From assembly GCF_035594765.1 (NCBI RefSeq), contig NW_026943822.1:18871769-18935768 (forward strand): a stretch of DNA of 64,000 nucleotides, read 5' to 3'. This document shows, one piece after another, positions 13,395 through 16,300 of the stretch. Source of the DNA: Anolis carolinensis (taxonomy: Eukaryota). Within the stretch, counting starts at the first letter, position 1. Each line of letters begins with the position of its first letter. A program made the position numbers and the translations under genes. Under the pieces are notes generated by a model. The model was given only the letters and a program-made list of their open reading frames with translations, searched no databases and was not told where the DNA came from.

Positions 13395-16300
13395 ATGCTG
13401 GCGGCGCGACGAGGTCTGTGGCCGGGCGGGCGCTGCTGGGGCTGCGAGCGCAAGAAGATGAAGCTGGTGGCGGCGGCGGCGCTGCTGGGCCTCGGAGGCT
13501 CCCTCCTGCTCCTGCTCTTCCCCGGGACCCACGCCGAGGAGCGCAAGAAGGGCCCCAAGGTCACCCACAAGGTGAGCAAATTGCAAGGCAGGCCCCTCAG
13601 TCGCAGGATTGCAAAGGCATCGCCAGAGAAAATATTGGGCGCGGCCCCTTTAAGAGCGCCATGCTTGCAGCCGGGCCAAGAACACCAGGGCCTGTATTTA
13701 TACACATAGATGTATTTCTATGTAGAATGTATTTTGGGTTGTCTGGCCATGTTTCAGAAGCATTCTCTCCTGACGTTTCGCCCACATCTATGGCAGGCAT
13801 CCTCAGAGGTTGTGAGGTCTGTTGGAAATTAGGCAAGTGGGGTTGATATACCTGTGGAAGGGTGGGAGAAAGAACTGTCTGCTTGAGGCAAATGTTGCCA
13901 CTGGCCACTTTGATTCACATTTAATAGCCTTGCAGCTTCAAAGCCTGCTTGCTTTCTGCCTGGGGGAAGTGTGAATGTTGCCACTGGCCACCTCGATTTG
14001 CATTCAATAGCCTTGCAGCTTCAAAGCCTGCTTGCTTCCTGCCTGCCTGGGGGAAGTGTGAATGTTGCCACTGGCCACCTCGATTTGCATTCAATAGCCT
14101 TGCAGCTTCAAAGCCTGCTTGCTTCCTGCCTGCCTGGGGGAAGTGTGAATGTTGCCACTGGCCAGCTCAAGCTGAGTGGGAAAAGGAAAGAGCCTGAAGC
14201 TGTTAGGAATAGTGGGAGTTGAAGTCCAAAACATGTGGAGGGCCCAAGTTTGTCCATGCCTGGTCTATGTTGTTTAAGCAAGAAGGTAAAGGTTTCCCCT
14301 GACGTTAAGTCCAGTCATGTCTGACTCTGGGGGTTGGTGCTCATCTCCATTTCTAAGCTGAAGAGCCGGCGTTGTCCGTAGACACCTCCAAAGTCATGTG
14401 GCCGGCATGACTGCATGGAGCGTCAATGTTACTTTCCCGCCAGAGTGGTACCTATTGATCTACTCACATTTTGCATGTTTTCGAACTGCTAGGTTGGCAG
14501 GAGCTGGAGCTAACAGTGGGCGCTCAAGCCGCTCCCGGGATTTGAACCTGGGACCTTTCGGTCTGCAAGTTCAGAAGCTCAGCGCTTTAACGCACTTGGC
14601 TCCTGTTTAAACAATACGTACACCAAAATTTAAAGACTAGACTTTGGAGTAAATTATAAATTAATCCTCCAAAGGGATTAATGCAATAAATTGATATTTA
14701 AAACCGGGAGCGAAGAGGATTCAAGGGAGCTGCCCTGAGTGGATGGATATTCATTCGCCCATTTGGCCCAGTGCTGCCTGCAGTAATTAGCAGCTGCTTT
14801 CTCCCAAGGCCGCAAGCAAACGTCCCACCTGATCCCCCTTTTAAGTCGGCATTCCAGGGATTGATTTTAGGCCTTTTCTGAATGCAAAGCACGTGCCTTG
14901 ACATCAAGCTGCGGCTGCTTTGTGAAAAGGATTGGTACGTATCAAGCAAAGGAGCCGCAGCAGCACTGAGTCGAATCCAAGTTTTGCAACTCGCATTTAG
15001 TCCCCGTGGCCGCGACAAAAAGGACGGTGCCAGGAATCAGAAGTGTGTGGCCCTCGGAAGCCTTTTAACTTGCCAATGGTATTCAGTCTGTTCTCAGTCC
15101 AAATACAAACAAGTTCTTGAGAGAACTCCAGAAGACAGGAGCAGAATTCAAAACGATCTTAACAGACTAGAGAGATGGGCCGAAACTAACAAAATGAAGT
15201 TCAACAGGGACAAATGCAGAAAAAAATGGAATGCAAAGATACAGAATGGGGGACGATGCCTGGCTCGACAGCAGTACGTGTGAAAAAGATCTTGGTGTCC
15301 TCGTGGACAACAAGTTAAATATGAGCCTACAATGTGATGCGGCTGCTAAAAAAGCTAATGGGATTCTGGCCTGCATCAATAGGGGAATAGCATCTAGATC
15401 CAGGGAAGTCATGCTCTCCCTCTATTCTGCCTTGGTCAGACCACACCTGGAATCACTCTGTGTCCAATTCTGGGCACCACAGTTGAAGGGAGTTGTTGAC
15501 AAGCTGGAAAGCGTCCAGAGGAGGACAACTAAAATGATCAAGGGTCTGGAGAACAAACCCTATGAGGAGTGGCTTAAAGAGCTGGGTATGTTTAGCCTGC
15601 AAAAGAGAAGGCTGAGAGGAGACATGATAGCCATGTACAAATATGTGAGGGGAAGTCCTAGGGAGGAGCAAGCTTGTTTTCTGCTGCCCTGCAGACTAGG
15701 ACGCAGAACAATGGCTTCAAACTACAGGAAAGGAGATTCCACCTGAACATCAGGAAGAACATCCTCACTGTGAGAAGGGCTGTTCAGCAGTGGAACTCTC
15801 TGCCCCGGACTGTGGTGGAGGCTCCTTCTTTGGAGGCTTTTAAGCAGAGGCTGGATGGCCATCTGTCAAGGGTGCTTTGAATGTGATTTCCTGCTTCTTG
15901 GCAGGCGGTTGGACTGGATGGCCCATGAGGTCTCTTCCAACTCTACGATTCTATGATTCTAACTGAAAGGAGATCCTTTTTAGAGTAACTTCCAGTTATC
16001 CCCCAGCAGAGGCTGGGGATTGTAAGAGATATAGCCCATGCATGTTAATGTTTCCACTGCACTCAGTCTGCAATGCCTCTTGTTTCTGGGGTCTTCTTTA
16101 GGTATATTTTGACCTGAGGATTGGAGAGGAAAATGTGGGGCGCGTCACCATCGGCCTCTTTGGAAAGACGGTTCCAAAAACAATTGAGAATTTTGTTGCC
16201 TTAGCCACAGGAGAGGTGAGTTGTATCTCAAGTCTGGAACTGTTCTAATTGATAGTAGGGATGGAAGCTGGGGTCTGAAAAATACCCTTTGAAGCTTTTT

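Follow-up and report, generated by a model that had tools for sequence, protein, structure and literature searches.

A hammerhead motif in PPIB intron 1 of the green anole is best read as part of a truncated Poseidon-type Penelope-like retrotransposon

Minimal hammerhead ribozymes (HHRs) of Penelope-like elements (PLEs) lack helix III and loop 3, are palindromic at positions 15.2–16.2, and carry a nucleotide between A9 and G10.1, together with a conserved G10.1-C11.1 pair, a long helix II, a short helix I, and a location in the pseudo-long terminal repeat (pLTR) (Cervera & de la Pena 2014, PMC4209133). Their activity in vitro is low and is seen only with dimers or trimers (PMC4209133). In the green anole, Anolis carolinensis, a PLE of this kind, Poseidon_Ac (PAc), has been described, with its 2,667-nt Repbase consensus given in File S1 (Mob DNA 2024, PMC11167929). 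The open reading frame (ORF) of PAc opens where stem II starts, with C3 and G8 preceding the start codon and the cut falling 26 nt after it (PMC11167929). Here, we analyzed a 64,000-nt stretch of A. carolinensis DNA (contig NW_026943822.1, positions 18,871,769 to 18,935,768; hereafter the window, numbered from its first letter), for which an earlier interpretation without database searches, the sequence-only reading, had proposed an intact minimal hammerhead on the minus strand within intron 1 of PPIB.

The behavior of PAc RNA has been described in vitro. No cleavage occurred without PAc protein, although endonuclease-dead protein still supported it; C3G or G8C abolished cleavage, and the double mutant partly restored it (PMC11167929). 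The ribozyme mutants left insertion in vitro unaffected, such that cleavage is not required for it, and no RNA-seq reads start or end at the PAc cut site (PMC11167929). Reverse transcription of PAc starts in an AC-rich stem-loop 111 to 118 nt into the ORF, the target is AT-rich DNA, and a protein-binding motif has been proposed within the initial 172 nt of this frame (PMC11167929).

The 53-nt string underlying the sequence-only reading was recovered on re-reading at 13817 to 13765 of the minus strand, exactly as claimed, and all 53 nt are identical to the head-to-tail junction of Poseidon_Ac, comprising the final 17 nt of the unit followed by ORF nt 1–36. The published unit ends in cctcacaacctctgagg and begins with atgcctgccatagatgtgggcgaaacgtcaggagag; these ends abut in a tandem array and, once joined, give the motif. 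The ATG of the ORF (13800–13798) supplies A9, U, and G10.1 of the hammerhead, and 26 nt further lies 13772, placing the cut predicted between 13772 and 13771 at the published PAc cut site. The description of the PAc hammerhead (PMC11167929) thus matches the window motif letter for letter, and the likeness extends to the place of the start codon, the N-terminal peptide, and the order of the downstream ORF. By eye, 58 of the first 60 ORF nt of the local copy equal the Poseidon_Ac consensus, and translations of three window copies (the local one and those at 43340 and 29441) correspond to the N-terminus of Poseidon_Ac_1p. The sequence-only reading had invoked Penelope, an origin that the lack of any match to a Penelope pLTR consensus was to refute; a check found the identity at the junction instead. 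We conclude, with a probability of roughly 0.95, that the motif is the standard hammerhead at the pLTR–ORF junction of a Poseidon-type PLE (Poseidon_Ac or a close subfamily), present in the intron as an end-piece. Published work already covers the element and its hammerhead, together with the cut site and the biochemical behavior.

The anatomy of the motif is consistent with this assignment (Table 1). Every hammerhead core position (C3 U4 G5 A6 N7 G8 A9, G12 A13 A14, A15.1-U16.1, and H17) is present between 13806 and 13772 of the minus strand, confirming the claim of a complete catalytic core. Stem I and the palindrome also stood as first drawn, whereas stem II, given as 4 bp, has 6 bp. Every structural feature listed for PLE minimal HHRs (PMC4209133) was found, including the extra U13799, the G13798-C13780 pair, and ACGU at 13776–13773, which upholds the assignment to the minimal type I class. 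Helix I, at 3 bp, differs from the 4 to 5 bp that are typical and the 2 bp of D. virilis, and the survey lists turtles and snakes among reptiles but not this lizard family (PMC4209133). Compared with canonical type I hammerheads (Rfam Hammerhead_1 RF00163, HH9, and HH10; satellite and retrozyme), the motif shares the catalytic core and the order of helices, but is without a helix III hairpin or a recognizable loop I–loop II tertiary contact and falls below the Rfam scores. A strict descriptor was also applied: the core and U H were required, an additional nucleotide was permitted, stem II had to be closed by G-C and reach at least 4 bp, 15.2–16.2 had to form a Watson-Crick pair, and stem I had to count 3 bp or more. 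On both strands of the window, the motif was its sole match. First-order Markov sequence amounting to 400 window-equivalents yielded 0 matches to the strict descriptor and 1 to a relaxed version, from which we take it that the motif is not a chance occurrence at the scale of one window.

Four points weigh against this reading or parts of it. The pLTR upstream of 13817 is clearly unlike the published consensus and only loosely similar to it, which suggests that the local copy belongs to a related, older Poseidon-type subfamily and not to the young Poseidon_Ac itself. Homology of the pLTR and the tandem repeat to Poseidon_Ac was judged by eye and by one 15-mer search. The hammerhead models of Rfam, a scan proposed with the sequence-only reading, found nothing, either at the gathering score across the whole window or at E≤10 in 1 kb and 101 nt around the motif; the only hits were chance snoRNA, miRNA, and lncRNA matches in the GC-rich exon, and the absence of a helix III hairpin may make the score too low. 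Finally, inertness of the fragment at PPIB, taken up below, is no more than probable; assembled contigs are blind to RNA ends and strand.

The PPIB intron copy is a dead fragment and not an autonomous element. Homology is lost at ~13721–13729, which is ~+75–80 of the ORF and short of the usual end at +111–118, leaving only ~24 codons. No reverse transcriptase (RT) or GIY-YIG endonuclease ORF was found in the local copy, and no ORF of at least 150 aa lies beside it in the direction of the hammerhead. Two ORFs of that size overlap 13700–13846: 13148..13846 (+) is on the opposite strand, and 13013..13705 (-) lies 3' of the fragment, running antisense across PPIB exon 1. The local copy differs from PAc in having no RT/endonuclease ORF, in its diverged pLTR with a 3.2-fold amplification of 87 bp, and in ending near +75 as opposed to +111–118. 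Judging from its sequence, the 87-bp array probably represents pLTR sequence of the same insertion that has been amplified: a 15-mer from the published pLTR has one match per 87-bp unit with 2 mismatches, and another at 57906–57920, against 0.22 matches expected by chance. The 87-bp unit also resembles the Poseidon region cut by the published endonuclease. In the contig pile-up described below, the family has a loose-end consensus at 13859, and 13914–13961, part of the 87-bp unit, appears as a second hugely abundant module.

The architecture of the parent element explains why such end-pieces abound. PLE units lie in tandem, with reverse transcription initiating ~111–118 nt inside the ORF of the next unit, and each 5'-truncated insertion therefore keeps at its 3' end a stretch of pLTR followed by the hammerhead and ~100–115 nt of ORF start. 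Cleavage by the parental ribozyme falls after C17 and, as published, takes place only with the element's own protein present. By sequence identity, the copy in PPIB intron 1 is one such end-piece, inserted antisense to the gene and cut short at ~+75. A monomer allows helix I (3 bp) and helix II (6 bp) but not helix III, and the three-helix hammerhead is not its preferred fold. The hammerhead-compatible monomer is predicted at -8.6 kcal/mol vs -14.4 for the minimum free energy (MFE) structure, where CUCUGA pairs with UCAGGAG; a double-hammerhead dimer, although it can be modeled, falls short of the optimum (-17.7 vs -33.0 kcal/mol for the dimer MFE). These predicted folds agree with a reluctant, weak ribozyme.

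To place the local copy in its genome-wide family, we scrutinized Logan contigs from four public runs of the same organism, aligned to 13650–13990 at 80% likeness. Such contigs reveal neither strand nor RNA ends, and none of the runs is reliably RNA. Between 27,000 and 71,000 contigs per run covered 13734–13865, against single contigs only in the unique flank at 13650–13721, indicating that the Poseidon end-piece family is enormously abundant. Within the motif, six sites carried variants that amounted to ~5% of depth or above in one or more runs (13774, 13775, 13779, 13780, 13783, and 13790). The four commonest form two CpGs, 13774/13775 and 13779/13780: G16.2 and C15.2 (13774 and 13775) were changed in ~16–17% each, G12 (13779) was A in ~19%, and C11.1 (13780) was U in ~34%. 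The remaining sites were a G>A change at 13783 that turns U.G into U-A (4–6%) and a loop change at 13790 (~7%). This concentration at CpGs points to neutral decay of methylated transposon copies and not to compensatory evolution; no two-sided compensatory change in helices I or II was visible in these per-site frequencies, in which linkage is not readable. Multiplying the unchanged frequencies (0.83 x 0.84 x 0.81 x 0.66) leaves about one-third of family depth with the core letters kept, assuming independent sites. Intact copies are thus probably common, the genome probably holds thousands of them, and the "intact" core of the local copy is not special.

Across 13772/13771 the pile-up showed neither a break nor a step in depth; contig depth is a rough measure, and this agrees, if held loosely, with the published account in which uncleaved RNA serves as the insertion template. 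Many family contigs ended at AT-rich flanks, and many shared a discrete 5' boundary at 13817/13818 beside AT-rich DNA. A few contained head-to-tail joints of ~75–80-nt units with short AT spacers, which suggests that elsewhere in the genome the hammerhead end-piece occurs as mini-insertions or in small tandem arrays.

The host gene is presumably PPIB, a name we take from the secreted cyclophilin with a KKGPKVT N-terminal motif; cyclophilin motifs also occur in later plus-strand exons, viewed singly, near 16514 and 16923. In agreement with the exon 1 donor at 13571/13572, the motif lies ~195–245 nt inside intron 1 and antisense to the gene, where the sequence-only reading had put it. A CpG island spans 13000–13599 (GC 0.63–0.71; CpG observed/expected 0.6–0.8) with the motif at its edge, and CpG observed/expected falls to <0.1 at 13800–14199. 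Directly upstream of the island, 12600–12999 is extremely AT-rich (GC 0.12–0.15).

This setting raises the question of co-option, which we regard as highly improbable. The pLTR of full elements is thought to hold a promoter. Upstream of the hammerhead, the same strand carries a pLTR remnant that might drive a minus-strand transcript toward the PPIB promoter, and cutting of that RNA by the ribozyme, with PAc protein supplied in trans or through pairing with another copy, could shape an antisense RNA affecting PPIB. The position at the CpG-island edge and an intact core, including both CpGs that are lost in 16–34% of family depth per site, fit such a role, as do contigs bridging the unique flank and the repeat in runs guessed to be RNA. 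However, the RNA label of those runs is a guess, their strand is not readable, and PPIB pre-mRNA alone explains intron contigs. Retention of both CpGs needs no selection: the one-third of copies expected to keep the four CpG letters by chance, or slower decay in a hypomethylated CpG-island shore, suffices. Moreover, the published RNA stays uncleaved without PAc protein, and even the active element yields no RNA-seq ends at its cut site (PMC11167929). The predicted active folds are 6–15 kcal/mol less stable than the inactive ones, and the RNA bound by the protein has been mapped to ORF nt 1–172, of which the local copy, ending near +75, is without nt ~80–172, part of the proposed protein-binding stretch. 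It is accordingly very unlikely that the hammerhead and pLTR remnant form an antisense unit in PPIB intron 1 whose RNA is cut at 13772/13771 upon Poseidon protein expression; if they did, the promoter-proximal output of a housekeeping gene would be tied to transposon activity. The sequence-only reading had proposed a self-cleaving RNA near the PPIB promoter that could cut antisense transcripts or pair with other genomic copies. This found no support, given a truncated copy of an abundant family, protein-dependent cleavage, and active folds predicted to be much less stable than inactive ones. Because the fragment is truncated, its family abundant, and RNA evidence lacking, it most likely does nothing in the PPIB intron.

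Even less probable is that the short copies are a distinct non-autonomous, retrozyme- or SINE-like derivative mobilized by Poseidon and not random 5' truncations. The discrete boundary at 13817/13818 and the few head-to-tail joints would suit such a derivative, and a 2026 preprint reports animal retrozymes to be non-autonomous PLE sequences. Yet the local copy runs past 13817/13818 upstream into pLTR-like sequence, depth declines gradually 5'-ward as truncation predicts, and short tandem and head-to-head mini-insertions have already been described for PLEs. A fortuitous match of the core letters, without any significance as a ribozyme, for which one could cite the silence of the Rfam models, a stem I of only 3 bp, a monomer unable to form helix III, an MFE fold that pairs the CUGA box with UCAG, and the missing compensatory changes, is ruled out by the descriptor and its random-sequence control, by PLE hallmarks lying outside the descriptor, and by identity to a ribozyme tested in vitro, whose C3G, G8C, and double-mutant results (PMC11167929), if reproducible, refute it.

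The Poseidon end-piece in PPIB intron 1 belongs to a dispersed repeat, of which the window contains at least six copies (BLAST within the window) whose core differences are mostly CG>TG/CA. As reported for PLE minimal HHRs (PMC4209133), the window pieces are mostly single and truncated, with some opposite-strand pairs. The 42-nt core string recurs at 29441–29482 with 1 mismatch and at 43334–43375 with 3; the former copy, on the plus strand, keeps the core letters but has C.A as its first stem I pair. The copy at 43340–43457 stops at ORF position +117, within the +111–118 interval published for RT initiation. The arms of the pair at 29333–29532 are 82% identical over 165 nt and join through GTGGG/CCCAC, an overlap lying just upstream of the hammerhead.

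Table 1. Coordinates of the hammerhead motif, the Poseidon-type pieces, and the host exon in the window.
Feature	Position	Strand	Details and basis
Helix III-less minimal type I hammerhead motif of a Poseidon-type PLE	13769..13809	-	Sequence, descriptor match, Poseidon_Ac junction identity, published cut site
Stem I	13809-13807 CCU / 13771-13769 AGG	-	3 bp
Core C3-A9, CUGAGGA	13806-13800	-	
Single unpaired U between A9 and G10.1	13799	-	
Stem II	13798-13793 GCCUGC / 13785-13780 GUGGGC	-	6 bp including two G.U; loop 7 nt
G12 A13 A14	13779-13777	-	
Palindrome ACGU (A15.1-C-G-U16.1)	13776-13773	-	
C17	13772	-	Predicted cut between 13772 and 13771
Poseidon ORF remnant, first ~72-80 nt	13729..13800	-	Translation; BLAST stops at 13728/13729
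3' part of pLTR, Poseidon-type subfamily	13801..13890	-	Ends in cctcacaacctctgagg, identical to published unit end; by eye; common to copy 43281-43339
87-bp unit, 3.2 copies	13891..14168	-	Resembles Poseidon ORF end / pLTR start (CCCCAG..GCAGGAAG...CAACATTCACAC); Tandem Repeats Finder, period 87, 94% matches
Exon 1 (signal peptide) of cyclophilin B-like host gene (PPIB)	13458..13571	+	ATG at 13458; donor AAG/GTGAGC at 13571/13572
Second, longer Poseidon end-piece	43281..43457	+	Core degraded by CpG decay (GGGTGAAACATC)
Head-to-head (palindromic) pair of Poseidon end-pieces	29333..29532	both	29433-29532 (+), inverted partner 29333-29436
Poseidon end-piece, core destroyed	11732..11850	-	G12>A (GGCAAAACACC)
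Short degraded Poseidon end-piece	21940..22011	+	GACAAAACGAC
Homologous Poseidon piece	58161-58186	+	BLAST within window
Shorter 3' Poseidon pieces	24987-25037 and 30172-30218		BLAST within window

A full Poseidon element in the window was considered and rejected, as the sole RT match is of LINE type. Pfam searches of eight of the ten ORFs of at least 150 aa (all but 13013..13705 on the minus and 13148..13846 on the plus strand) found no Poseidon-type RT. The match, a 231-aa ORF at 22284–22979 (+), hits RVT_1 (E 2e-24), contains YLDFSKAFD and FADDTKL, and represents a LINE-type (CR1/L2-like) RT remnant; it overlaps a repeat also present at 15462–15838 and 42900–43279. A 218-aa ORF at 21454–22110 (+), which covers 21498–21776, had no Pfam match at E≤0.01, and the degraded Poseidon piece at 21940–22011 lies a short way downstream of that stretch.

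For the family, the use of the pile-up lies in its agreement with uncleaved RNA as the insertion template. Beyond correct annotation, the finding matters little, and the motif is to be treated as a known repeat in this genome.

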